DNA from: Monocercomonoides exilis PA203
Taxonomy: Eukaryota > Protista > Preaxostyla
DNA length: 33,060 nucleotides
Direction: 5' to 3'
NCBI GenBank assembly: GCA_001643675.2
Contig: LSRY02000090.1
Coordinates: forward strand, 1 to 33,060
The translations under genes were made by a program, and so were the position numbers. Below are positions 12,587 to 29,908 of the stretch, piece after piece. The notes below the pieces were generated by a model, which did not search any database, had not been told where the DNA came from, and saw nothing but the letters and a program-made list of their open reading frames with translations. Each line of letters begins with the position of its first letter. Position 1 is the stretch's first letter.

Positions 12587-15500
12587 ATGGATCAAACCGA
12601 AGAAAGCCCTTCGTTAGACGAAGAGTTTGAAATTCCAACAGCAAGCGAATTGCAAAGTTTTATTGAAGAATTCTACGAGAATTACAAAAAAAACAAAAGT
12701 TTGACCGTTTTTTAGAAATAATAACTATGAAATTTTCTTTTTAAAAAATATGTGAATAGCAATTGAATCCCATGAAATTGTTGAAATGGAAGAAGAAGGA
12801 GATGTTGACGAATTAATGCCGCAAGCTGAAAAGAGGAAAAGCTCAAAACTTGTTCGAGAAGCATGGCTTGGTGAAAAGCAAGATTCAGAAGAAGATGAAG
12901 ATGATGATCAAATTAGAAGAATTGTTTTGAATCGAAGAAAAAGCAGCAGTTTACGAATGAGAAACAGCAGAAGCAGTTTTTTGATGGGAAATCACATTCA
13001 AAGCAATGAAAATAAAGAACGATCGAATCATTGTGTTATTACTGATGAAGCGAGCTCAAAAAGGAGAATTGTTGACGATACAGATGATGAGCAAATGTCA
13101 GACGAAGATTCTTACGAAGAGGATAGTAGTTCAGAAGATGATCATGAAGATTCTGATGATAAAGCTGAAGGATTCATCAAAACGTTCAACTTCTTGAAAA
13201 CTTTTGAACAGAGACATAAAAGTTTAACTGGACAAAAAGAATATCTCGAAGAAAATGATGTATCGATTGGACCAGATCACCATTCAGAAGAGAATACGTC
13301 ATTTGAAACCCATTTGGAAAGAAAATCTTGCGAAATAGAAAATGACAAATCTGATCATGAAAATTCTGATCAGAAACATTTGAGTTGTGATCAACAAACA
13401 GCGGAAAATAAAATTATAACTGTTCAGAAGAAAAAGGTTCAATGCATTGAAATTGTTGACTCGGATGATGAATATGAACAGGAGGAGACAACTGTGGATC
13501 ATACTAATGTTGAACAAAGTGATAAAAAGGAAAAACTTGTCTGTGAAGCAGAAAATAACCCAGCAGATTTATCTGAAAACTCGATCAATCAGGATTCATC
13601 AAAGGAATTATTGTCTGACATAACCACCAAAGAAAAGGATCAAGAATCAACTACGAATGACATCTGCGGAAGTGACGTGAACATTCAATCACTTGAAGAT
13701 CAAGGTTTTAATGTTGCGAAGATGAAAGATCATTATCTGTTAATGAAATATTACGAAAAGAAAATGAACGAAGAGAAGGAGTTGCTTGAAAAAATCCAAC
13801 TTGAGAAGGAGCAATTGTGCGAGAATGATTGTTTGGAGGAGGAATTATCTCATTCAGATATTGTGGAAGCAAAGATTCAGGAACTCAAACAACAAGGAAA
13901 GTTTGTGTCCGAAGAACAATTTTTGCGTAAAAGGGCACTGAAAAGAAAAGTCGCAGATTCAGGTTTGGTTGCATTTTCAGAAGAGAACTTGAATCACAAA
14001 GATAAAGAAATCACTCAATACATTCCCAAAGAACATGGAAACAAAGGCTATGAGAACATGTCGGACGAATATGGCAAGCAAAATTTGAGACTTGATAAAG
14101 AAAGAAACAGACAAACACTTATGGATGTTGGATTGACAAACGAAAAAAAACAAAATATTGCTGAGCATTTCCTTCATCAGAGGAAATATGCACAGTCAAC
14201 ATTGCATAAGCATGCATGGGTGTTGCGGTTGTATGATTATTTTGCTGAGGATATGGACTTCAAGCCGTTTCCAATGATGCTGGAGTGTGTGAGAGGATTC
14301 ATTCGTTTTTTGGCTTACGATTGTCGATACTGTGTTGGATCCATCTATGCTGTTGTCCTTCCATCATTGAAACGAATACAAGTGAAAATGTATAACAAGC
14401 CTATTGACGTTCAGCTGAACACAGAATTAAACCTCATAGTGAATGAAATGAGAAGGGATAAATCTTTAAAACAAAAGGGTGAAGGGAAAGAGCCCTTGAT
14501 GACATTTGATGTTAAATACTTAGTTCAAAGCATACCAGATTACTTCATGTCAAAAGCTGAGGAGTGCTCTCTTTTTCTTTTCGCACTTCACACTGGAGCC
14601 AGAGCCATCACATGCGGAAATGTGAGGCTCTGTGATGTAAGACAAGTAATTATCGAAGATGATTCTATTTTTTTAAAAATTCGACTAATGAGAAATAAGG
14701 GAAATGACAAGTGGAATCACATAGTTCTGCTTGAAAACCAAACAGAAGAAAACAAATCACTAGATGCTGTGTACTGGATGAGACAGCACATTCTTCAAAA
14801 GTTTGGTAAGGACTTATTTAATAAAGAAGAGTGGCCTTTGAAAGAAAAATCAGAAGAATTAATTTGGAGCTGGAGTTCAGAAACAATGAGAACCAGATTG
14901 AAGAAGAGACTGGAACTTGCTGGTTTTCCTCCAGAAAATTTCGGGTTTCATTCATTTCGCAGTGGATTCTTATGCTCTGCTTTGATGAATGCTGGTTCAA
15001 ACAAAGAGAAAAGAAATTCAATTCTTGAAACATGTGCATTTATTGCTGGTTGGATTCCATATTCAAGGTCACAAATGGTGTATGTGAAAAAATCTGCATC
15101 ACAAAATTTTATTGCTTCTCGAGTAATAATGACAAGTTCTGACAAGAGGAAAAAATCATTCGTTGAAAAGAAGTTGTTGAGAACTGAATCATTTCATGGA
15201 TTTAAGTTACAGCCTATTAAATGGAATGATGACATTATTTTCGTAAATTTCTATCATCAAATTTTGAACAAGCTGAAAAAGGAAAGAGATGGAAAGCGCA
15301 ATTCAACGGATACGTGTAGATACTTGTTTCATAGAGCTCTCTCTCAATACTCAGAAGAAGAGCCAGTTTTGGAGGAGAAAGCGAAATTAAAATATCTTCC
15401 ACTATTGGAGAAGAGTAAATCAAGTTCACACTTTCAAATAAAATCTAATATGAGGAGTGAAATCGCGAGGAAAGATTTGTTGTTTATTCTGAAATTGGAT

Positions 15501-15827
15501 CAGTCAAAATTGAATGAGATGGTTGAGATGTTTTGGAGTTTTATGAAAGAGAGGAATATTGTCGAGAAAGAAGTGAAAACAAGAAATATTCAACTAAAAA
15601 ATGAAAGTGAGACGAAAATGAAATTTGAGAAAAGAGAAAAAGATAAAAACGGAAAAAGAAAAAGAAGAATATGGACAAAAGAAGAAGATGATATTTTGAA
15701 AGAACACAAAAATAAGGGAGAAAAGTGGATTGAAATAAGCAAATTTCTTGAAAATAGAACTGCAGGAGATTGTTATGACAGATGGAGAAACATTAAGAAT
15801 AAAGAAAAAAAAGAAAATTTGTCTTAA
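12587..15827 (+). CDS. YR1: tyrosine recombinase (lambda integrase/Cre fold) with acidic N-terminus and C-terminal Myb/SANT domain; join(12587..12698,12760..15827), ~1059 aa
   Basis: Catalytic motifs in canonical order: HTGAR (R at 14601), RNKG, FHSFRSG (14949-14960), AGW (15051), VYVK (Y at 15081). Upstream exon MDQTEESPSLDEEF... splices in frame to the 1013-aa ORF. Confidence 0.9.
12699..12759 (+). other. Predicted 61-nt spliceosomal intron of YR1
   Basis: GTTTGA...AATAG, AT-rich; removal joins ATG 12587 in frame with ATG 12786. Confidence 0.75.
15654..15797 (+). other. Single Myb/SANT repeat at the YR1 C-terminus
   Basis: KRKRRIWTKEEDDILKEHKNKGEKWIEISKFLENRTAGDCYDRWRNIK has the three spaced Trp, WTxEED and RT...DRWRN hallmarks. 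Confidence 0.9.
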
Positions 15828-16650
15828 TATTTCCTTTTTTTCTTTGTTTTATTATTTCTTTTTTGTTTTTTTATTAATTTATTCTTTCTTTTCATTATCC
15901 AAACATTTTGTTTCTTATTTTGAATTCAAACTTTAATCATTCAAATGAAACAAACAAATAATTCAAAGATAAATTTTAACAAATATTGATGAATTTTCTA
16001 TTTTAATTTTCTGAGTTTCTCAAAAATAAGTTTATTGACTTGTTCTTCTCAATCAAGTATTATATGTTCATTTTATTATTATATTTAAAAAGTTATATTG
16101 TTTATTGTTTATTCATTTAAAAAATGGGAAAGTTTTTTTTTTGAAAAGTCAAAATTTTTCTACATGTTGAATTTATGAGTCAAATCATTTTTTTATCATT
16201 TTTGTAAATACATGTATCAAATTACTACACGATGCAAATAATATAATGTGAATTTTTTGTTTTTCATAAAAATTCAAATTTCGAAAAATATCTTGGACAT
16301 ATGTCGAAAAATGATTCTTATTGTTTTTTGTTTTTGTTTTCCATTTAAAACATATTTTATTTTTCAAAAATAATTTCTCATACACATATTTGATTAATGA
16401 GCTTTTTTTGAATAATTGAAATGTTTTATTCTATTTATTTCAACAGATTTATGGAACAATTCGTTTTTATCTTTGAGTTTATTATAAAATGAACAATCAA
16501 ATGTGATAGTCATACAGATGACTCATGATTTAACATAACATTGATTAATTTTTCGATCAATTTTGTTGAAAATATTGCTTTTCATGCACCGAACATGATG
16601 TTTTTTACATCATCTTTCATTAAATATTTTTAAATATCAGAAAAAATAGG

Positions 16651-18705
16651 TTACGGATTTATTATAACCGACATTTTATAAAATAAATCTCGTTTATGAC
16701 TACCGGTCTGCGCTAACCCTAACCCTAACTTCTTTGATTCCTCTTCCTTGAATGAAATGCCATGAAACACCTCCAACTCTAACAGTGTTTCATCGAAGAC
16801 CTGCTGCTTTTGACCTTCAGAGGGAGGAGCGATTAGGCGAGATGCAACCATCGCCCGTTTCACAGCATCTTTGATGTAGCCGCATTGGGCTAAGCGAAGA
16901 GGGTTCCATCCTGCAATGAAAGCAGTCTTTTCCATGATGGCACGTTGTGTTTCAGCATCTTGATTGGACATTATCAGTGCTGTGCAGATAAACCCACTGC
17001 GCAGTGAGTGGAAGCAGAACAGGTGTCGTGGGTATCCTGCTGTTTCGGCCCTTCTTTTGAAACGTTCCCTCATGCAATCGGGAGTCAAAGGCCATATGAG
17101 CTTGTCAAGGTTTGTCTTATCTTTATCTTCATTCCAATTTGATAGTCTAACTCCTGTTTTCTGATAGATGTGAAGAGAAAGCCAATAAACCGGATCATCG
17201 TCTTTCTCCTCTTCCTCATTTCCCTCAATTGTGACTTCTCTTCCCCAATCATATTGCCCCTTCGCGCGATAAAAGATGATTGTGCACAAAAGTTTCTTTG
17301 TCACTTTTGATTTAATCACTTTTGTTATATGACACAGTTTAACATTCGACAACGTGACGGCGCGCGCACCTGTGTGGACTGCCACAAGAAACAAAGAACT
17401 TTCAAGGGCCTTGTCGAGATGCCTTGTTGGAATAAATTTGACAATTCTCTTCACATCCATCAGCAACGCAGGTTCTTTTTTTAACACTTTTTTTTTCACA
17501 TCACTTGAGTATTTCAAACAACGAACAGCATGTTTCATTGTTTCAATTGTTCTTTTATTTAGACGCATTCCTCTTTTAATAAGGTTCAATCTTTTAATGG
17601 ATGGAATGATGATATAGCATATGGAAGAAAGTGGATAGTGGCACTCCTTGCCACAGAATAGGACAAACCCTCTGGCCATCCGATGATGCAATGGCCAAGG
17701 TTCTAGCCCAATCTTGTGAGCCCAGGTGGTCAGAAGCCGCTCGACCCAAGAATGTTTGCGTCTTGTGGCTTCTGACCAAATCCTGTCAACTTGTAGATAT
17801 TTCTTTGTTCCCTCCACTCCAACGCGAGCGAGGGCGCTATCCATTTTGGTTGGATGGAAATACAAATCAGTTGGGCATGATGAGCAAGAGGAAGAAGCAG
17901 AAGCTGAGGCTGAGGCAGATGCAGAGGATGAAAAGGATTGAGAAGAGAGAGAAAAGGATAAATTTTCATTTGAAGATGATTTCTGATGAGATATCTCGGA
18001 TAATGCTTTTGCTTTTTCCATATAATATTGTTTATTATTTTTCAAATATTGTCTTTCTTCTTTCAATTCAATTAATGTTTCTTTAATTACATCTTTTTCC
18101 ATTTCTTTAATTTCTTCTTCACTCCCATCTGACTCTCCAGAATCTTCCTCAACTGGAATGTTATCTTCAGAATAATCTGAGACATCCAATTCCACAGAAC
18201 AATCTGAGACCTCCTCGCTGGTCTCAGTATCACTATCTTCAGAAAATCTTTTTTTCTCTTTTTCTATTTCCTCTTTCGTTTTATTTCGAGATGGTAAAAT
18301 TCTGTTAAGAGAAGGCGTTTTTGTGGGATTTTGAAGAGGAGGATGATGGAGTGATCTTGAATTCGTGGGAGTTGAAGAAATGGAAGAAGAAGATGGTAGC
18401 TGAAAACTGTGAAGTGGAGTTGTTCGAACTGGAGAAAGAAGTTCATTCATCATGCGCAACATTTTTGCGCAGACTTCTTCTCTGCTTATAAATTCTGTGT
18501 TCGTTGTTTGTTCATTTTCAGAAACTGTTGGTGTTGAAGGTGGATAAATAATCTGTGTAATTATTTGGTGATAAATAATGAAATAAAAATAAATAATTGA
18601 TATATCAAAATAAAAATTTCAAACATTTTGCATTGAATCAAATTCTTCATTGTTGATTTTTTCCAAACCAGAGGCACATTCGTTTGTTTCATATTTTGTT
18701 TCCAT
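16651..18705 (-). CDS. YR2: tyrosine recombinase paralogue, C-terminally truncated; complement(join(16651..18552,18625..18705)), ~660 aa
   Basis: Motifs HTGAR, RAKG, FHSLRSG, AGW and GYIK are collinear with YR1. Similarity ends near EVFHGISF (YR1 ESFHGFKL), just before the telomeric tract. The 5' exon METKYETNEC... splices in frame. Confidence 0.85.
16713..16729. repeat. Interstitial telomeric tract 1
   Basis: CTAACCCTAACCCTAAC, same orientation as the terminal telomere; it reads as LGLGL in the YR2 frame. Confidence 0.9.
18553..18624 (-). other. Predicted 72-nt intron of YR2
   Basis: Minus strand GTTTGA...ACACAG, AT-rich; joins a 27-codon exon to 30 open codons that precede ATG 18462. Confidence 0.75.
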
Positions 18706-18907
18706 TGTTTAGATATTTCCAATTAGAATTAATTCAAAAACTGAGTAATTCATTATGGTTATGCTCAATATTTAGAGGAAAAAAAAGTGATATGAAAAAA
18801 TCATTGGAAATTTAAAAAGTTAAGTATAAAAATTATATAATACAAGTGTGTATTTCTTTCTTCCAGTTGAAAATAAGCTCATATCATTCCTCTAAACTAA
18901 ATGTACT

Positions 18908-18931
18908 CCTATCCTAACCCTAACCTAACCT
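18908..18931. repeat. Interstitial telomeric tract 2 (slightly degenerate)
   Basis: CCTATCCTAACCCTAACCTAACCT, same orientation as the telomere. Confidence 0.85.
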
Positions 18932-19910
18932 GGATGAGTTCTGAATGAGAATGCTCGGCCAGCTTATCTGCTCTGATAAATGCGATAATTTTGTCAAACA
19001 AACAACTTTTCTCGTTCAAGCTCATGTCAAGCATTGTCAGACTACGCAGCATGCAAAATAGATGGTAGAAGTCACGAATATCATCGTTGAATGCAATAAA
19101 AACTAGAATAATTTCAAAACTTCTGAATCTTTTGAAAAAGGATAAAATGGCTTCTCTCTCTTTGCGGTATTCCTGTTCATGGCCAATCTGTATTCATTCA
19201 AAAAACACCTTTAATGAAAAATGAATGAAATAAAAAAGTCAAACCATCTTTTTTTTTGGACTTGAAATATTTTTCCATCTCCAAGGGATTGGTAATTATC
19301 TGTCAAACTGGTTTTCTTGTTCTTAGAATCCATTGTGAAGTTGGCTGTGATATCTGATGAAAACACATATTCTCCAAATTAACTCCTTTTCAATGACTTA
19401 TTCAACGCCATGTCTTTGCTGACAGCATACCAGTAGGATTCGTGTAAATGGCAATGTGCTTGTTGTTAAGGCCTGCTGAGTGTTTTGCTCAACTCGTTTC
19501 CTCCATTGTCCAATACCCCAATTCTCTTTCCTTTTCCACAAAACCAACCTCCCTTTACAAATCACGCAAAACAAGTCCTGCCCAAAAGATATGCCAAGCG
19601 AAACACATTTCCCACAAAATGAACAAGCAGTTCAATTCTATCTTTCTGGCATTCAACTCGCTTTTTCTGCATCTTGATTGAATTATTTTTCTTTCAAAAT
19701 TTCGCAGGAGATGTTGAATCATATGTTTTGTAATTTTTAACCAAGTTCAAATTCCTTGAAATTTCCCCCACTTATTCACTTTTCACAAGCAATAGATGCA
19801 AACAGCCACTCGCTCCTTCATCTGCAAGAAAAGTCCCTGTTCTTCTGCATTGCTATAACTTGAATGGGTGCATCCGAAGCCGTGTGCTTAAACAGCTTAA
19901 ACATGCTCTG
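18932..19910 (-). pseudogene. Decayed unknown gene running into telomeric tract 2
   Basis: Minus-strand peptide stretches (LKITKHMIQHLLRNFERKII...ILWEMCFAWHIFWAGLVLRDL; IRDFYHLFCMLRSLTMLDMSLNEKSCLFDKIIAFIRADKLAEHSHSELIQ then VRLGLG*) with internal stops and frameshifts, plus a probable short GTTTGA..AAG intron near 19210-19245. Confidence 0.5.
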
Positions 19911-20280
19911 GCTGCAGTAAATAATTTATCAAAAATCTTCACTTAAAAAATTATAGGTTCATCACCCTTATTTCTTTGTAAAAATAGATTATTTTGTTTC
20001 ATTGATTCACTTGTTTTAATGCAAATGACATCGACGGCACATGAAAATGTGTGGGCTTCAGCTTTATTAGATATTTGATTTGGTGCTTTTAATTCTTTTA
20101 ATTTGAACAAAACACGAATATTTCGAAAATGAATTTATTAACTGTTTTGAAATAATTTTACGATTTCACAGTCACCTTCAGCGAAACAAATATTTCTTGG
20201 TATGCTGGAGTTTATAAGAAATGAATGGTTAAATAAATAAATGCTTCTTTTTTCTCTTTTGATTTTTTCACTTTTTTTAG

Positions 20281-20657
20281 AGAAACTTTCACAGCTGGAA
20301 TATTTCCCAGAAAGCGAGCAGAAACAGAAAATTGAAGAATTGAACAATATTTTGGAAGAAATGGATAGAAAAGAATTTGAATCAGTTTTCACAAAAGAAC
20401 TGTTCAATGAAATGGATGAAATGATAAAAGAAGAGAAGCTTTCGATGAGAAATGCAATTTTGCTGCTGAAGCACATTGGATATTTGCATACATCGAGAAG
20501 AATGTTTATTTATGGCTTTCAAGAAACTTCGTTGAACAAAAGATTTGAAAAGATGATTTTTTACGAAAATAAGAAAAAAGAAGGAAAGAACGAAAAGCTT
20601 TTTGTTGATCTTTGCGAATGCTGTTTTTCTTTGAGCTTCTTCTTCACATATGGGTGA
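20281..20657 (+). pseudogene. Short or truncated member of an expanded helical-protein family typical of Monocercomonoides
   Basis: EQKQKIEELNNILEEMDRKEFESVFTKELF...AILLLKHIGY...KNEKLFVDLCEC matches a family I recall from that genome (not searched). Preceded by a GTATGC...TTTTAG intron (~20200-20280); stops early. Confidence 0.6.
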
Positions 20658-21421
20658 TTTTTTTTGAAATCATAAAAAATAACGAAGTTTGATCATAAAA
20701 AATTTTCATAAAGGGTGAGGTTGAAAAGATTAATTTTATTTGAAAATGCATGAAAATATTGATCGATATATTATAATTATTAATTATTTGTTGATTTTAA
20801 TTTGTTTCCAATCGTTTTTATTTCAAATATCGAGAAATAAAAATAATTTCTAAAAAAAAAACGAAAATTCGATAAACCTAATAAAACATTAGTTAACTGG
20901 TTTATAAAACAAAAAAACAATAATGACAATACACAATCAATCAATTTTTTATATAAAAATTAATTTTATGATGTTATTGCAAAGAAATTTTTAAATTAAT
21001 TTTGAAGATCATAAAACATTTGTTAAATTTTATCAATTCACATTAACACTTACGCAAAAATATAATAGTAACATAAGACACTCATCAAGAAATCAACTGT
21101 TTGTTGATAAATTTGTTTGCAAACAAGTAATCTTAGAAATATTTAATTATTATCTAAATATCAAACAAAGTTTAAGATAAATAAAGAAAATATTAAAAAA
21201 TGAAAAGAAACTCGTCAATTTTTGCTTTTTCCACAAAAAATGCTTCTATCGCACGAACATCTTCATTTTATCTTCCTCTCTTTGTTTCTCCTCTGATTCT
21301 CTCTATCTCCTTCTCATCAATAATATGTCATCCAGTTATCTGCCTCCTTCGATGCTCTGTTTTTGTCCGCCTGTTCGTTTTGAGAACAGATTGGTTAATA
21401 ACCAGTTTCACATGAAAGGAT

Positions 21422-21898
21422 ATGAACAACAAAATGGTGCATGAATATAAAGCGCTGAACCATTGTTCTAGTATCCTTGTAGCGCCCATTTCTCCATATC
21501 GCTTCTGCATCCCCTTCCGCGGAACTCGCATCCCTCCGTTCACTTTCTCTTTGCTCGCTGGAGTTGACGTTGTGTCCATCTGCCCGTCTGTTCTGGCTGA
21601 CTCCGATGATTTTGGGCTGCCTGCTCCAGGATCCAGAAAAGTCTTCGCTTTGGACTCTGCCTGCGTCACCTTTCACCGCGCTCACCAGATATTCGTTAAC
21701 CAGCACACTGGCTTCTCTTTCCATCAGTGCGGCTCCCCGCTTTCCTCCGCGCTTCTCTCTCCACAGTCGTCCACCACATCTCCCCTTCCATCGGCAACAT
21801 CCTCTGGATCTGATGCTCCTCCTTCTTCGACGCCCCGACCTCCCTTGCAAACATCCGATCCGAGTTCGTACAGTAGAGTCTTATTCTTGTTCTTTTAA
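21422..21898 (+). CDS. Hypothetical protein exon/ORF (158 aa, Ser/Pro-rich end)
   Basis: ATG-initiated ORF in a GC-richer island; no recognisable domain; may continue to ~22450 via introns. Confidence 0.35.
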   Translation: MNNKMVHEYKALNHCSSILVAPISPYRFCIPFRGTRIPPFTFSLLAGVDVVSICPSVLADSDDFGLPAPGSRKVFALDSACVTFHRAHQIFVNQHTGFSFHQCGSPLSSALLSPQSSTTSPLPSATSSGSDAPPSSTPRPPLQTSDPSSYSRVLFLFF

Positions 21899-22449
21899 AC
21901 ATTATCAGTTGGCTACAGATGCATTTCTCAATGGCTGTATCATCCTTAAAGTTATTCCTCCCTCTATTTCTCCCTTCGCATCCCTCCTCTTTTCTCTTTC
22001 TTTCCATCCTTTCCTTCTTCCTTCTCTCCTTCTCTCTCATCCTCCTTGCCCAGATCTCATCCTCTCTCATTTCCAGTACTTTCATTCCTTTCTCAGTTAA
22101 CCTCAGCTCCGGAGGGCATTTCAGTATGAGGCCAAAATCCCTTCTTCTTCATAGCACACAAGCTTCTCAATGCACCATCCATCAACAGGCAGAAGCAATA
22201 CGTTGTCTTCCATTGTGCTTCTCCGCCTGCATGTCTCAGCACATCCGACCCAGTGGTGGAGAAGAGAAGGAAGTGTGAAATGGAGCGAGCACTGTATTTC
22301 TTGAAGAACAGAAGAAGAAGAGGAAGATGAAGAAAACGAAGAAGAAGAAGAATACATAAGTGAGTCTGAATGTGGAGACGATGTTGAAATAGTCAGACGA
22401 ATTTATACTGAAGAAGATGGAAATAATTTTCCATCTGGTTTAGAAAAGG

Positions 22450-25400
22450 CTTTTGATGAGAAGTGATGATACCATTTGGCTGATTTTCTGCATCATCTTC
22501 GTTTTCCTCATGTGTCGTTTCAGGAGAACTGTGAGTTTGTGCTATTTTGGCTTCAATTTCGCTTTTTTTTCATTTTCATTTCCTTTCTCAGATTTCTTTT
22601 TTGAAGAAATAGAATGGGAGAGCAGGATTGATGAAAATGGAGAAGAGGACAATGAAGATGAAGATGGATATGAAAAAGCAGTGGAAGAAGATGACATCAA
22701 AGAAGAAGGTGATCGAGACGAGTTCCGCTTCTAACTTGCTTCCGGCTTCCTCTTTTGTTTTTTGAATTCAGCTGCATTTTGCGTGAGAGTTGAGAATGGA
22801 TATATTATAGAGATCGGTTTGAGGGTGTTGCTGCTGTGTTTTTTATTTTTATTTTTATTTTTTTTTTTTATTTTTATTTTTTTTTGATTGTGTGTGAGTG
22901 GTTGGCGGCAATGAAGAAATTGTTTGAAAACAGATGCATTTTAAGAGAATGATAAGGAAGATGAACCAGAAGATGAAGAAAAAATAAATGATGATGATGT
23001 AGCTGTAATAGCTTTTGAATGAAGAGATATGGCCGATACTGATGATCTGGGTTTTGAATGAGATGACTTTGAGGAATGAGTTTGTAAAAAATGCAAAGAA
23101 GAGGAGGATGAAGAAGCAAAAGTGTTTGGAGTTGACAGAGAAGGATGTGGAACTTCAACTTCACTTCTCTAAGCAGAAGAATCCGAAGAAGGAGGAGAAG
23201 AAGAAGCTTCTTTCATGCTTTTTTTGCTGTGTTTGACGATTATCTTGTGAAATACAAAGAAAACTTACAAATAGTGAGTTTTTCTTATAAGGATCAGAAG
23301 AAGAAAAATAATAAGTTTTGAAATCGAACATCTTAAAACGCATTCGCATTTTCACTTCGCCTTGGCTCCGAATGTTTTTGTTTTTTTTTGGAACATAATT
23401 TTCATTTTGCTTTTCTTTTTATTCTTCTTTTGATGTTCTTTTGAAGGAGACATGTTTTCTGAAATATTATCATCTCCTTTTTCTATAGACAGAAATGTGA
23501 TTTTATTCTGAATGACATCTGCAAAGCTTCCATATTGAACAGCTTGCCAGAAAAAATTATTGATCTTTTCGAATCGACAGCGCCTTCATTATCCAAACAA
23601 CTGGAGGCGATTCGAAATGCTCCTTCATCAACACCTTCCTCTTGTTCACTTCGCTTTTGAAGTTCGATTCGCTTTTCTGAATTTTCTTCTTCTTCAAATA
23701 CGAGACAAACGCATTTCTCTTCTTCTCAGCCTTCTCCAGCGCTTTCCTCTGCTCGTCTTCGAGCTTTTCCCGCTCTTTCTCTGAGTTCTCATTCTCTTCC
23801 TCCAGCTGCTCCTTTGTCTCCTTCTCTGCCTCTTCCTTCTGTATCTTCTCTATCTTCCACTGTGTCGCTTTCTCTTTCTCAATTCTATCGATGCGGCTTG
23901 GAATAGCCGACTATATAGGTTCAGGAAAGCACAATGACGAAGAAGAAACGGGATGCTAAATTTGATTGGTGAAAGTTGGGGTATTGGTGGAAAAAGGAGA
24001 TATAGATAACTTTGAAAAAGGAGGTGAAAGTGATGGTGTTGAAGGAGGTAAAGCATTATCAATATGATTGTAATCAGATGGAATTTGTGAGGATAGAGAA
24101 GAAGAAGATAAGATGATTATAAAGAAGAGGAGAAAGGAGAAGAAGAGAATGATGCTGATGTAGTTGGCTGAGGAGTTGATTGAAGAGTATGATTTGGTCC
24201 ATTTAACGTTGTGTTAATAGCATTTTGCTGGTTAAAAGGCAAGTTTTTCATTCTTTCTGCTTCTCTTTCTCTTTCTTCTCTCAGCTTCCTTTCTTTTATT
24301 CACCTCAATCTTTCATCAAATTTCTGTCTCACCTTCATTCATTGCTCCTTTCACCACATCCACATCTTTCATTTCCTCCTCAAACAACTTGTCATCTGCA
24401 CGCGCAATATCACCAGCTGACATCAGAGTCAGTATCCTTTCATGTGTCAGCAACGAATACAGCGAAAGAAAATCTGTATTCTTTTTCTCCTCTTTCCTCC
24501 TCTTCATCCCTACCAATGAAGCATGAATGCCGCTTCGTGGATCCTTTGCGTATTTGTTGGAACTTTGTGGAGGGATCAATAAAGAAATCTGAGGGATAGA
24601 CAAAGCAGAGGATGATGATTGAGAAACAGATGGGGTCAAAGCTTTGTTAGCAGTTGTATTCTTTGACATAAAGAAATCATCATCTTCTTCTTGAAGCAGA
24701 ACCATGTTATCTTTGCTGCATTTCTTCCTTCAACCTGCCATGTTTTTTTGTCTTTTCCTTTGGATCACTGAAAAACGTTTTGAAGCGCTGTGAATAAGAA
24801 GAAAATGATGATGAAATCACTGAATATGTGTCACGAGCATGCCTATCTTTCAACGAAGCTGATTTCGACACTTCAGACTCACTTCCGTTCAAAACACTCT
24901 GCTCGCTTTTCCTTCTCTCTTCTTCCTTTTTGTCTTCGACAATAAATTGCCCCTTTCCTCTTATATTTTTCCTCATTGCATTCTCCCCTGCTGCTTCTGC
25001 TTCCTGCTTTTTGACAATTGAACATTAAAACTCTTTCTCTGAAACGACTTTTCTAGACAATTGTTATTCTTCGAAGTATAAAACTCTAAATGATGTTCTG
25101 CTTCCATCAAATGACTCCAAATGGATCATTCTATCAACTTTTCTATTTGAAGTTCCATCTTTCTCTATCTTTTAATATTTCTCATGTTCAATTCTTTTTC
25201 CTCTTTCTCTTCCTCTTTCATTCATTTGTTCATTCTCGTTCATATTCTTCATTTTCTTCCTGTTGACCTCTTTTTCTTTTCTTCCCAGCATCTGCCTGAA
25301 GAACTCCACCTCAAACAAAAGGGCATCCGCATAACAGAAGAACGATGGATGGAAAAGCGGTGTTAACGAAGGAGAAGAACACATCAGAGTGAATTGGTGA

Positions 25401-27037: not shown

Positions 27038-29782
27038 ATGAGAGAGAAAGAGAAAGAGAAGGAGAAGGAGAAGGAGAAGAAGAAGAAGAAGGAGAAGGAG
27101 AAGGAGAAGGAGAAAGAGAAGGAGAAAGAGAAAGAGAAAGAGAAAGGAAGGGAAGGAAAGGAAGAAGAAAAGGAAGAAAGAGAAGAGAAAATTAAAGAAG
27201 AAGAAATAAAAGAAGAAGAAGAAGAAGAATATCAAAGAGGATTTATATTGGAAGATGTGGCAAAGGACAATGAATTATCAAATGAAGAAAGAAGAAAGAA
27301 AGAAGGAGAAAGAGAAGAAGAAGGAAACAAAAAAGGAGAAAGAAAAGAAGAAGAAGAAATAAACAATGAGAAAGAGGAAAATGTTTTGTTTTGTATAAAA
27401 ACTGGATTTAAACTAGATGAAGATGAAGAAAGTGAAGAAGCTAACGAGAAAGAAGAGAAAGAAGAGAAAGAGAAAGAAGAGAAAGAGAAAGAAGAGAAAG
27501 AAGAAGAAGAAGAGAAAGAGAAAGAAATAAAAGAAGAACTAAAAGAGAATAATAATAATAACATCAGTTATGATAAAGAAATGATTGACTGTTATTCAAC
27601 ACCAATGGAATTGATGGAGAGCATAGAAAAGATAGCTGAAGAGAGGAGGAGGAGGAGAAGAAGGAGAGAGAGAAATATTGAAGATAAACCAATTGAAAAG
27701 AAAGAAGAAGAGGAAGAAGAAGAAATGAAGATAGAGAAGAAGGAAGAGAAGAAGGAAGAGGAGAAAGATGAAATAAAGAAAGAAATGAAGAAAGAAAGTG
27801 AAAAAGAAGAAGATAAAAATGAAAAGAAGAAGAAGGAAAAGAAGGGTAACAACGTCATCAAGAATGAAATAGAATCAACAAAACAAGTTACAAAGAAGAA
27901 AATCAAAGAAGAAGAGAAAGAAGAGAAAGAAGAGAAAGAAGAGAAAAAGGAGAAAGAAGAGGAGATTGAAAAGAAATTGGAGAAATTAGAGAAGTATTTG
28001 AAAGAAGAAGAAGAAAACAAAAAGAAGAAAGCGGAAGAAGAAAGAGAAAGAGAAAGAGAAAGAGAAGAAGAAGAAGAGAAGAAGAAGAAGATAAAAGAGG
28101 AGAAGAAAAAGCAAATGATGGAGAGGAAGAAGAAGATAATGGAGCAGCAGATGAAGAAAGAGGAAGAGAGGAGGAAGAAAAGAAAAGAAGAAGCAGAAAC
28201 AAAAAGAAAAGAAATTGAAGAAATCCAAAGAAGAAATGAAGAAATGTATAGAAAACAAAGAGAAGAGCTAGAAATGAAGCTGAAAGAAGAAGAAGAGAAG
28301 AAAAGGAGAATTATAGAAGAAAGAAAGAAAGCAATAGAAGAAGAGAAGAAGAAGAAAGAATTTAGAGAGAAAGAGAAGAAAGAGAATGAGAAGATGAAGA
28401 GAATGGAAGATATTTGTGTGGAAAGGATGAAGAAGAGGAAGAAAAGAGAAGAAGAAAGAAGAGAAGAAGAAGAAAGAAGAAGAATGTTTGAAGAAGAAGC
28501 AAGAAGTGCATTAGAGATGGAGAGAAGAAGAAGAAAGGAAGAAGAGAAGAAGAAGAGAGAAAGAGAAGAAATGAAGAAAGAAGATGAAATGATGATGATG
28601 TTTAGAGAGAAAGAGAGAGAAAGAGAAGAAGGAGAAGCCAAAGAAAGAAAGATGATGGAGAAGGAAGAAGAAGAAATAAAGAGAAGAATAGAGAAGATGA
28701 TGAAGGAGAAAGAGAAGAAGAAGAGAGAGAAAGAGAAGAAGGAGAGGAAGAAGAGGGAAATGGAAGAAAAAGAGAGGAGAAAGAAAGAAGAAGAAGAAAG
28801 AAGAAGAGAAGAAGAAGAAAGAAAGAAGAAAGAGGAAGAAATGAAAAGAATAGAAGAAGAAGAGAGGAAGAAGAAAGAAGAAGAAGAAAGAAGAAGAAGA
28901 TTAGAGCAGAGAAGAAGGGATAAAGAGAGAGAGAGAGAGAAGAGAAAGCAAATAGAGGCAGAAAGAATGAAGAAGGAGAAAGAGATGGAGAGGAAGAAGA
29001 AAGAAGAAATAAGGAAGAAAGAGGAAGAATTGAAGAGGAAAGTGAAAGAAGAGCTTAGAAAAGTGTATTTGATGGAGAAGAAGCAAAGAGAAGAAGCAGA
29101 AGAAAGAGAAAGAGAAAGAGAAAAGGAAAAGGAGAAGGAGAAGATGAGAAGGAAGAAAATAGAAGAGGAAATGGAAGAAGAAAGAAGAAGAAAGAAGAAG
29201 AAGAAGAAAGAAGAAGAAGAAGAAAGAAAGAGAAAAGAAAGAGAAGAAGAAGAAGAAGAAGAAGAAGAAGAGAAGAAGAGAAGAAGAGAGAAAAAGAAGA
29301 ATGTTGGAGCAAATTATGAAGATGGAGAGAGAAAGAAGAGAACAAGAAAGATTGAAGAGAATAAAAGAAGAAGAAGAAGAGAAGGAGAAAGAGGAAGAGA
29401 AGGAGAAAGAGAGAAAGAGAAAGGAAGAAGAAGAAGAAGAGAAAGAGAGAGAAAGAAGAAGAAAGGAAGAAGAAGAAGAAGAAGAGAAGAAGAGAAAGAA
29501 GAGGAAGAAGAGGAAGAAGAGGAAGAAGAGGAAGAAGAGGAGGAAGAAGAAGATTTAGAGGAAGAAGATGATGACATTGAAAATGATGAATATGAATATG
29601 AAGAAGAAGAAGAAGAAGATTATGAATTGGAAGAAGAAGAGGATGATGAAGAAGAATACGATGAGGAGGAGGAGGGAGGAGGGAGGAGGAGGAGGAGGAG
29701 GAGGAGGAGGAGGAGGAGGAAGAAGAAGAAGAAGAAGAAGAAGAAGAAGAAGAAGAAAAGAAGAAGAAGAAGAAGATGTTGA
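27038..29782 (+). CDS. E/K/R-rich coiled-coil / single-alpha-helix hypothetical protein (914-aa ORF; ends uncertain)
   Basis: Long open frame with charged helical pattern (MMERKKKIMEQQMKKEEERRKKRKEEAETKRKEIEEIQRRNEE); both ends lie in slippage-prone purine repeats. Confidence 0.55.
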   Translation: MREKEKEKEKEKEKKKKKEKEKEKEKEKEKEKEKEKGREGKEEEKEEREEKIKEEEIKEEEEEEYQRGFILEDVAKDNELSNEERRKKEGEREEEGNKKGERKEEEEINNEKEENVLFCIKTGFKLDEDEESEEANEKEEKEEKEKEEKEKEEKEEEEEKEKEIKEELKENNNNNISYDKEMIDCYSTPMELMESIEKIAEERRRRRRRRERNIEDKPIEKKEEEEEEEMKIEKKEEKKEEEKDEIKKEMKKESEKEEDKNEKKKKEKKGNNVIKNEIESTKQVTKKKIKEEEKEEKEEKEEKKEKEEEIEKKLEKLEKYLKEEEENKKKKAEEEREREREREEEEEKKKKIKEEKKKQMMERKKKIMEQQMKKEEERRKKRKEEAETKRKEIEEIQRRNEEMYRKQREELEMKLKEEEEKKRRIIEERKKAIEEEKKKKEFREKEKKENEKMKRMEDICVERMKKRKKREEERREEEERRRMFEEEARSALEMERRRRKEEEKKKREREEMKKEDEMMMMFREKEREREEGEAKERKMMEKEEEEIKRRIEKMMKEKEKKKREKEKKERKKREMEEKERRKKEEEERRREEEERKKKEEEMKRIEEEERKKKEEEERRRRLEQRRRDKEREREKRKQIEAERMKKEKEMERKKKEEIRKKEEELKRKVKEELRKVYLMEKKQREEAEEREREREKEKEKEKMRRKKIEEEMEEERRRKKKKKKEEEEERKRKEREEEEEEEEEEKKRRREKKKNVGANYEDGERKKRTRKIEENKRRRRREGERGREGEREKEKGRRRRRERERKKKKGRRRRRREEEKEEEEEEEEEEEEEEEEEEDLEEEDDDIENDEYEYEEEEEEDYELEEEEDDEEEYDEEEEGGGRRRRRRRRRRRRKKKKKKKKKKKKKRRRRRRC

Positions 29783-29908
29783 TGGAGTTGAAGAAGAAGA
29801 GGAAGAGGAGGAGGAGGAGGAAGAGGAAGTAGTAGTAGTAGTAGAAGAAGAAGAAGAAGAAGAAGAGGAAGAGGAAGAGGAAGAGGAAGAGGAAGAAGAA
29901 GAAGAAGA
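29480..29908. repeat. (GAA)n/(GAG)n/(GTA)n microsatellite cluster
   Basis: Direct reading, e.g. (GGA)n near 29680-29720 followed by (AGA)n. Confidence 0.9.

Follow-up and report, generated by a model that had tools for sequence, protein, structure and literature searches.

What is a tyrosine recombinase gene doing as the last intact gene before a telomere, and does the Myb repeat at its C-terminus tie the enzyme to telomeric DNA? We studied these questions in a stretch of 33,060 nucleotides (nt; the window, hereafter) that forms the left end of contig C92 (LSRY02000090.1) of Monocercomonoides exilis PA203, an amitochondriate oxymonad with a published long-read assembly (PMC8767320). The assembly searched comprised 82.3 Mb in 101 contigs. 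The gene, at positions 12587-15827, encodes a tyrosine recombinase (YR) joined to a Myb domain, and we think it probable, though far from settled, that this YR-Myb gene supplies the recombinase for a Crypton-like DNA element of chromosome ends, belonging to a large, old and undescribed family.

Structure and position of the gene

A scan of the window for open reading frames (ORFs) gave an uninterrupted frame of 1013 codons at 12786-15827 in the positive strand. Upstream of it, exon 1 (12587-12698, 37 codons plus 1 nt, positive strand) starts with the ATG at 12587 and is in frame with the ORF once a 61-nt GT..AG intron (12699-12759) is removed; exon 2 (12760-15827, including the stop) was delimited from the ORF, Pfam matches and alignment and encodes an acidic, low-complexity N-terminal half without any domain match, followed by the recombinase and the Myb repeat. 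The intron call, which a reading of the letters alone (the sequence-only reading) had proposed as spliceosomal, was supported by comparison of the copies on C92, C34 and C76. The ATG at 12786 is replaced by ACG in both closest copies (C34 and C76), where the exon-1 ATG is conserved, and four of the five substitutions in exon 1 relative to these copies are synonymous. The intron itself presented about nine changes among copies, yet its GT..AG borders and its length of 61 nt were kept in all three full copies of the element. Residue numbers refer to the 1013-amino acid (aa) ORF, and the two exons were analyzed separately.

The terminal telomere array, (CCCTAA)n in the positive strand, occupies positions 1-3311 (period 6, 560 copies). 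All that separates it from the gene is a satellite of 348-bp units (3312-10652) and AT-rich DNA in which no ORF exceeds about 80 aa; the gene is therefore the last intact one before the telomere, as had been read from the letters. The closest database protein is an annotated uncharacterized protein of M. exilis. Public gene models (MONOS) for the family are truncated or labelled as hypothetical proteins: the model P0001 (MONOS_15979) ends before the H-x-x-R motif, and that of the C34 copy omits the region from H-x-x-R to the catalytic tyrosine, together with the Myb repeat, via a probably wrong intron. The public annotation of M. exilis thus hides the family.

Recombinase and Myb domains

The protein carries the full catalytic set of a tyrosine recombinase, R606, K638, H722-x-x-R725, W756 and Y766 (codons starting at 14601, 14697, 14949, 14958, 15051 and 15081, positive strand), and all six residues were invariant in an alignment of 23 sequences that included paralogues and environmental homologues. 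The recombinase spans residues 440-800 (14103-15185, positive strand), with a core-binding and a catalytic domain. An AlphaFold2 model of residues 440-1013 had a mean predicted local distance difference test score of 86.5, and its top Foldseek match was Cre, over both domains (E 2e-6, target template modelling score 0.6, about 340 columns), followed by XerA, lambda Int, XerH and IntI. Pfam searches with the whole protein matched no recombinase family, only Myb; Phage_integrase was matched weakly by seven of the 23 family members (best E 9e-5), and a protein language-model atlas returned generic integrase-like clusters only. The identification as a recombinase comes from the alignment, the fold and these weak matches in relatives, and both hallmarks of the superfamily, the ordered catalytic residues and the two-domain fold, were found. 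The catalytic set noticed in the sequence-only reading is confirmed.

The single C-terminal Myb repeat, the other component claimed from the letters, was confirmed by Pfam (Myb_DNA-binding, PF00249) at residues 963-1003 (15672-15794, positive strand), with an E-value of 1e-7 and 32-33 bits against a cut-off of 24.4; in the AlphaFold2 model three helices correspond to it (model residues 526-573). The protein thus combines a complete, two-domain tyrosine recombinase of the Cre-like kind and a Myb repeat at its C-terminus. Compared with chains in PDB, the repeat scored best against those with two or three c-Myb repeats (whole-chain E 6e-12; 1.8e-15 with the family profile), followed by the single c-Myb repeat R3 (E 7e-5) and by TRF1/TRF2 (E 0.2; about 1e-3 with the family profile). 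Its third helix (DRWRN-IK) looks telobox-like by eye. Since the E-values favour c-Myb repeats over TRF1/TRF2, the binding specificity cannot be read from the sequence, and on this point we agree with the earlier reading.

The element and its telomeric tract

The gene lies within a unit of about 6.0 kb, element A (10715-16728, positive strand), composed of an AT-rich 5' region, the YR-Myb gene, a 0.9-kb 3' region and a terminal telomeric tract. Its right boundary is sharp; the left one is approximate and was placed where similarity with the right end of contig C25 stops. The ORF is the only long one in the element, and Myb is its only Pfam match. No pair of terminal repeats, inverted or long, was found in 10500-19100, where the sole strong inverted repeat was a palindrome at 10621-10703 (see below), and an Rfam scan of the window gave no match.

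The tract, CTAACCCTAACCCTAA, is 16 nt long and marks the centromere-side end of the element (16713-16728, positive strand). It was found exact and in chromosome polarity at seven of seven A-type genomic ends, next to flanks that were unrelated wherever they could be read, and it joins non-telomeric flanks with an overlap of 0-3 nt. Subfamily A2, with 51-54% protein identity to A, ends in the same tract. The distal, telomere-facing side varies among copies: on C29 the copy breaks off at residue 811 and a telomere cap follows, the copy on C39, which lies on another element, is reduced to its last 190 nt, and at the left end of C25 a copy of A is cut inside the ORF and joined to the tract of an A2 element.

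Immediately inside element A lies element B (16729-18912, negative strand), an older YR element from the class of opposite orientation that is distally truncated and has lost its Myb-coding part; its open frame (16651-18462) extends 78 nt into the end of element A. A short telomeric tract (18913-18931, positive strand) marks its centromere side as well. Members of the B-orientation class have their tract about 450-600 nt upstream of the ATG and their ORF directed to the chromosome end, and in the opposite-orientation pairs L025/L029 and L026/L027 the sequences are 99.7-99.9% identical from the tract on, with different flanks. A maximum-likelihood tree separated three M. exilis clades with 99-100% support, two exclusively of A orientation and one exclusively of B orientation; orientation toward the chromosome end is thus inherited within clades. 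Stacks on truncated older elements occur with A on B in the window, with A2 on A at the left end of C25, and also on C39 and in L023. The shared architecture is therefore a short telomeric tract on the centromere side, a variable distal side and stacking on eroded older elements.

Copies in the M. exilis genome

The full protein as query matched 46 genomic places, and a recombinase-core query from a different clade matched 103, so that the family has at least 103 YR-core copies. Telomere positions were taken from direct sightings together with a telomere-embedded variant repeat (see below) by which at least 55 ends could be recognized. A directly seen telomere lies within 51 kb of at least 58 of the 103 copies, and a contig start within 51 kb of 25 further ones; subtelomeres of this size make up about 5% of the genome. 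A clearly internal position was found for only three loci (C30 at 385 kb, C15 at 1.03 Mb and C52 at 124 kb), all degenerate or fragmentary, and about 15 of the 103 matches were unplaced. The copies are thus not scattered at random; a random distribution is what the sequence-only reading had named as speaking against its proposal.

Pairs of paralogues gave ratios of nonsynonymous to synonymous substitution rates (dN/dS) of 0.13-0.25, and purifying selection acts on the copies. Identity amounts to 99.7-99.95% in several pairs located at different ends, and near-identical copies have different distal neighbours, as on C5 (50 kb from the contig start) and C64 (9 kb). The intron is retained in each of the three full A copies, which argues for spread at the DNA level. 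The telomerase reverse transcriptase gene, TERT, is present in M. exilis. Further intact subfamilies were noticed near chromosome ends (C47:9137, C59:43251, C34:44539, C12:1585066 and others), with frames of 1164-1608 aa and 30-31% identity in the recombinase core.

Relatives in other hosts

A profile search of 1.84 billion proteins returned 289 clusters at E<=1e-30, many of which span the recombinase through the Myb repeat. Telomere-type tracts stood beside the ORF or at the contig end in 15-17 of 23 environmental contigs with homologues. Two of these, L041 and L042, together make up a complete unit: a flank, (TTAGGG)3, the body, the ORF and a terminal array of at least 19 repeats. Contigs L046-L049 carry one element, 99.6-99.9% identical, whose proximal (TTGGGG)n tracts measure 21-33 nt; the left flank differs among all four contigs, and the constant distal end adjoins three different neighbours. 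As flanks and neighbours vary while the ends are constant, the element is a discrete unit with two defined ends. Its ORFs contain 25-28 in-frame TAA/TAG codons and stop at TGA, i.e., they follow the ciliate nuclear code, and such ciliates have telomeres of the TTGGGG type. The tract therefore follows the telomere repeat of the host, since the ciliate-code homologues carry (TTGGGG)n and not (TTAGGG)n.

Environmental elements of the G class, whose ORF is directed to the chromosome end, are flanked by a telomeric tract at each side. A GCAAC(T)CG-like motif opens several element bodies where they adjoin the tract and is a candidate recombinase site. In another environmental relative (L037:1384-1470), the sequence TTCAAAC stands after the tract, and between it and the recombinase ORF come three direct repeats of 20 nt, which are possible arm-type binding sites.

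The sequence-only reading had proposed a recombinase steered to telomeric or subtelomeric DNA by its Myb domain. The tie to telomeric DNA is supported by elements bounded by telomeric tracts and by TTGGGG in the ciliate-code relatives; the part of the Myb domain in it is one that we infer.

Other sequences of the window

The satellite next to the telomere array (3312-10652) consists of about 21 units of 348 bp, with 56% GC and a G skew, amid a region of about 30% GC. It is confined to four chromosome ends (C92, C34, C3 and the right end of C25), meets the telomere at a different unit phase at each end, and is 97% identical beside two recombinase subfamilies that share only 51% identity. The palindrome at the border of satellite and element (10621-10703) has 38-nt arms that are 79% complementary, with the inner 16 nt perfect, and a spacer of 7 nt. 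It is also present at C34 and the right end of C25, exactly three ends in the genome, and given its lox- or FRT-type geometry it is a candidate recombination site.

Within the terminal array, positions 171-190 (negative strand) contain one copy of a recurrent 11-nt telomere variant, TTCAAACTAGG, which is the sole complex variant in about 8 kb of telomere. The 20-mer that contains it, GGGTTCAAACTAGGTTAGGG, occurs at 101 places in the genome; all 100 places listed lie inside terminal arrays and in telomere polarity, and genome searches found no internal locus with the TTCAAACTAGG sequence. New telomere junctions are nested: flanks end in AAAC, AAC, AC or C and are followed by TAGG and then TTAGGG. 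Because the junctions form such a nested series, we propose copying of one fixed template, possibly the part of the telomerase RNA beside its template, or else microhomology-primed copying at such a variant.

On the centromere side, just inside the recombinase stack, the window contains two dispersed repeat families, one at 18927-20652, 75-83% identical to many internal loci, and one at 20648-22650, with copies 88-99% identical. These are ordinary interspersed elements and not chromosome-end elements. An ORF of 914 codons at 27038-29782 consists for the most part of AAG/GAA-rich low-complexity repeats, arranged in tandem at 27698-29908, and may encode a Lys/Glu-rich protein or be merely open simple sequence.

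Mechanism and alternative explanations

If the YR-Myb gene is the recombinase of a mobile chromosome-end element, the Myb domain would bind the telomeric tract, and telomeric repeats would serve as the recombination substrate. Acting between the telomeric tracts on either side, the recombinase would release the element as a circle, the circle would be joined to a short or freshly healed telomere, and telomerase would cap the resulting end; as ends erode and further elements are added, stacks would build up. The short, constant tract of 16 nt would agree either with joining to telomeres that were very short or with an element end that is itself defined.

Several observations weigh against this proposal. 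Neither recombination products nor circles nor empty sites were observed. The proximal tracts are short (13-80 nt), compared with terminal arrays of about 3 kb, and a tract constant at 16 nt in subfamily A is not what random integration into long arrays predicts; such integration was considered and is unsupported for this subfamily, where the tract is always of that length. The M. exilis elements of C orientation have no definable distal terminus. The Myb domain scores nearer to c-Myb than to the TRF-type telobox, in a comparison by whole-chain E-values in which the c-Myb chains hold several repeats. Lastly, the variant TTCAAACTAGG had been taken as a possible excision scar of the recombinase, which is now doubted, as templated synthesis explains it better.

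Part of this evidence would also be expected of a passive subtelomeric gene family similar to yeast Y', in which a short telomere invades an interstitial tract elsewhere and copies outward by break-induced replication, the YR-Myb protein having some other telomere-related role, for the host or selfish. Short proximal tracts and variable distal sides would follow from such copying, eroded older elements would fit repeated rounds of erosion and end-copying, the A copies on C92 and C34 have the distal satellite in common, and telomerase is present, so that ends can be healed. We nevertheless hold this account to be unlikely, because it leaves unexplained why the catalytic residues are invariant from a metamonad to ciliates, and also the dN/dS of about 0.15. 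Nor does it account for near-identical copies with different distal neighbours (C5 versus C64) or for a ciliate-code element whose distal end is constant beside three distal neighbours, and a tract of invariably 16 nt at seven A-type ends is not what annealing at variable registers would give. Another account, in which the recombinase only makes circles of the element plus one tract and a short end anneals to the tract and copies the circle, by replication and not by strand exchange, recalls the roll-and-spread model of telomere circles that reportedly came from work on Kluyveromyces lactis. A circle as template would set the tract length by the element, place additions terminally, allow variable distal ends and both orientations, and call for an active recombinase, and retention of the intron fits a DNA template. 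Rolling-circle copying should leave tandem arrays of the same element, however, and none were seen; the stacks mix subfamilies, and no circle was observed. We find this version distinctly doubtful.

The remaining two explanations have very little in their favour in our estimate. Non-autonomous retroelements, reverse transcribed from the telomeric overhang like Athena/Coprina or HeT-A/TART, would have the geometry of the A class, i.e., a 3' end with the C-strand tract facing the centromere and a 5' end facing the telomere and often truncated. But a reverse transcriptase gene is missing from the elements, all three A copies retain the intron, and a whole clade stands in the opposite orientation, which is impossible by overhang-primed reverse transcription; retrotransposition was rejected on the intron and on the clade, and it is highly improbable. 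We give equally slight credence to linear episomes or plasmids with a protelomerase-like recombinase that acts on the palindrome at 10621-10703 and occasionally fuses them to chromosome ends. A lox-like or telomere-resolution-like palindrome does lie at the distal edge of A and A2, but at three genomic ends only, and it is absent from the other subfamilies; moreover, Cre/Xer-type enzymes ranked first among the fold matches, with no protelomerase in the top 50.

Returning to the recombinase of a chromosome-end element, a further and more tentative idea, which we offer with considerable reserve, is that these elements may be part of the rebuilding of chromosome ends and not simply telomere parasites, i.e., that they would join, by recombination or by copying, an end whose telomere has been lost or is critically short and then be capped by telomerase, in a process shared by metamonads and ciliates that could also explain the internal telomeric tracts of the ciliate germline (Tel-1, see below). 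If true, this would give the retrotransposon telomeres of Drosophila a counterpart built on DNA. The elements offer a test case of whether DNA elements can contribute to end protection, and their stacks can be read as a record of how about 85 chromosome ends in a single organism were repeatedly eroded, healed and added to.

Comparison with known systems

The YR-Myb elements resemble Cryptons, which have one YR gene, often with a C-terminal DNA-binding domain (Goodwin 2003; Kojima and Jurka 2011, PMC3212892). As in Cryptons, the recombinase is the only enzyme, with no reverse transcriptase or RNase H, and neither terminal inverted repeats nor long terminal repeats were found; in Cryptons, both termini carry a short direct repeat identical with the target, to which the telomeric tract at one end of the present elements, 13-20 nt long, may correspond, and a circular intermediate has been proposed. 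They differ in that the fused domain is Myb here and GCR1_C in CryptonF, in that the end sequence is two to three telomere repeats here and 4-6 bp in Cryptons, and in the chromosome-end niche. The Pfam families DUF3504 (CryptonA), GCR1_C (CryptonF) and DUF3435 gave no match. In the survey of Cryptons, GCR1_C is the only fused DNA-binding domain and the other groups lack Myb (PMC3212892), so that within this literature the architecture belongs to no described Crypton group; a CryptonA paper of 2026 has no link to Myb or telomeres either. The absence of a reverse transcriptase ORF and the retained intron set the elements apart from DIRS, Ngaro and VIPER, and the lack of a DUF3435 match and a size of 3-6 kb without cargo from Starships and their captains. 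The genome papers on M. exilis (including PMC8767320) do not mention the elements.

The sequence-only reading knew of no described YR-Myb fusion, and our full-text literature searches on tyrosine recombinases in connection with Myb or with telomere-specific transposons returned only the case of the nimaviruses. The endogenous nimaviruses of crustaceans have telomere-repeat-specific YRs and insert into the host motif (TAACC)n (PMC10871703), and they thus share with the present family a eukaryote-resident YR tied to the host telomere motif. In contrast to a single-gene element of 3-6 kb, they are virus genomes of hundreds of kb (300-360 kb in pemoniviruses), their YR has C2H2 zinc and SAM-like domains and no Myb, and they target telomere-like microsatellites genome-wide (PMC10871703).

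The helicase-encoding Y' elements of yeast spread through homologous recombination. Y' and the present elements are both blocks bounded by short telomeric tracts, amplified among ends and with one large ORF; here, on the other hand, the ORF encodes a site-specific recombinase whose active site is conserved, and neighbours differ on both sides. The telomere-specific retrotransposons, i.e., TRAS/SART of Bombyx, HeT-A/TART of Drosophila and the Penelope-like Athena/Coprina, move via RNA with their own reverse transcriptase, and TRAS1 has a Myb-like domain that reads telomeric repeats. Compared with them (PMC8557442), the YR-Myb elements occupy the same niche in similar stacked, terminally truncated arrays with short telomeric tracts between, and have two orientation classes as TRAS and SART do; they differ in lacking reverse transcriptase and in keeping the intron.

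The ciliate-code relatives recall Tel-1 of the Tetrahymena germline, transposon-like elements with internal C4A2/G4T2 tracts at their ends that Cherry and Blackburn are said to have described in 1985, and to which, as far as we know, no protein has been assigned. Both are bounded by (TTGGGG)n, and although an identity of the two is only a lead, it would give a possible identity to these classic unexplained ciliate elements. The family has hundreds of members in metagenomes and an end sequence that tracks the host telomere repeat, and it may offer a natural site-specific recombinase with the telomere repeat as its inferred target. All small telomere-specific mobile elements in the literature searched, and all those known to us, are retroelements, and the only case with a recombinase is that of the giant crustacean viruses; a compact single-gene DNA element homing to chromosome ends would be a new way to occupy the telomere niche.

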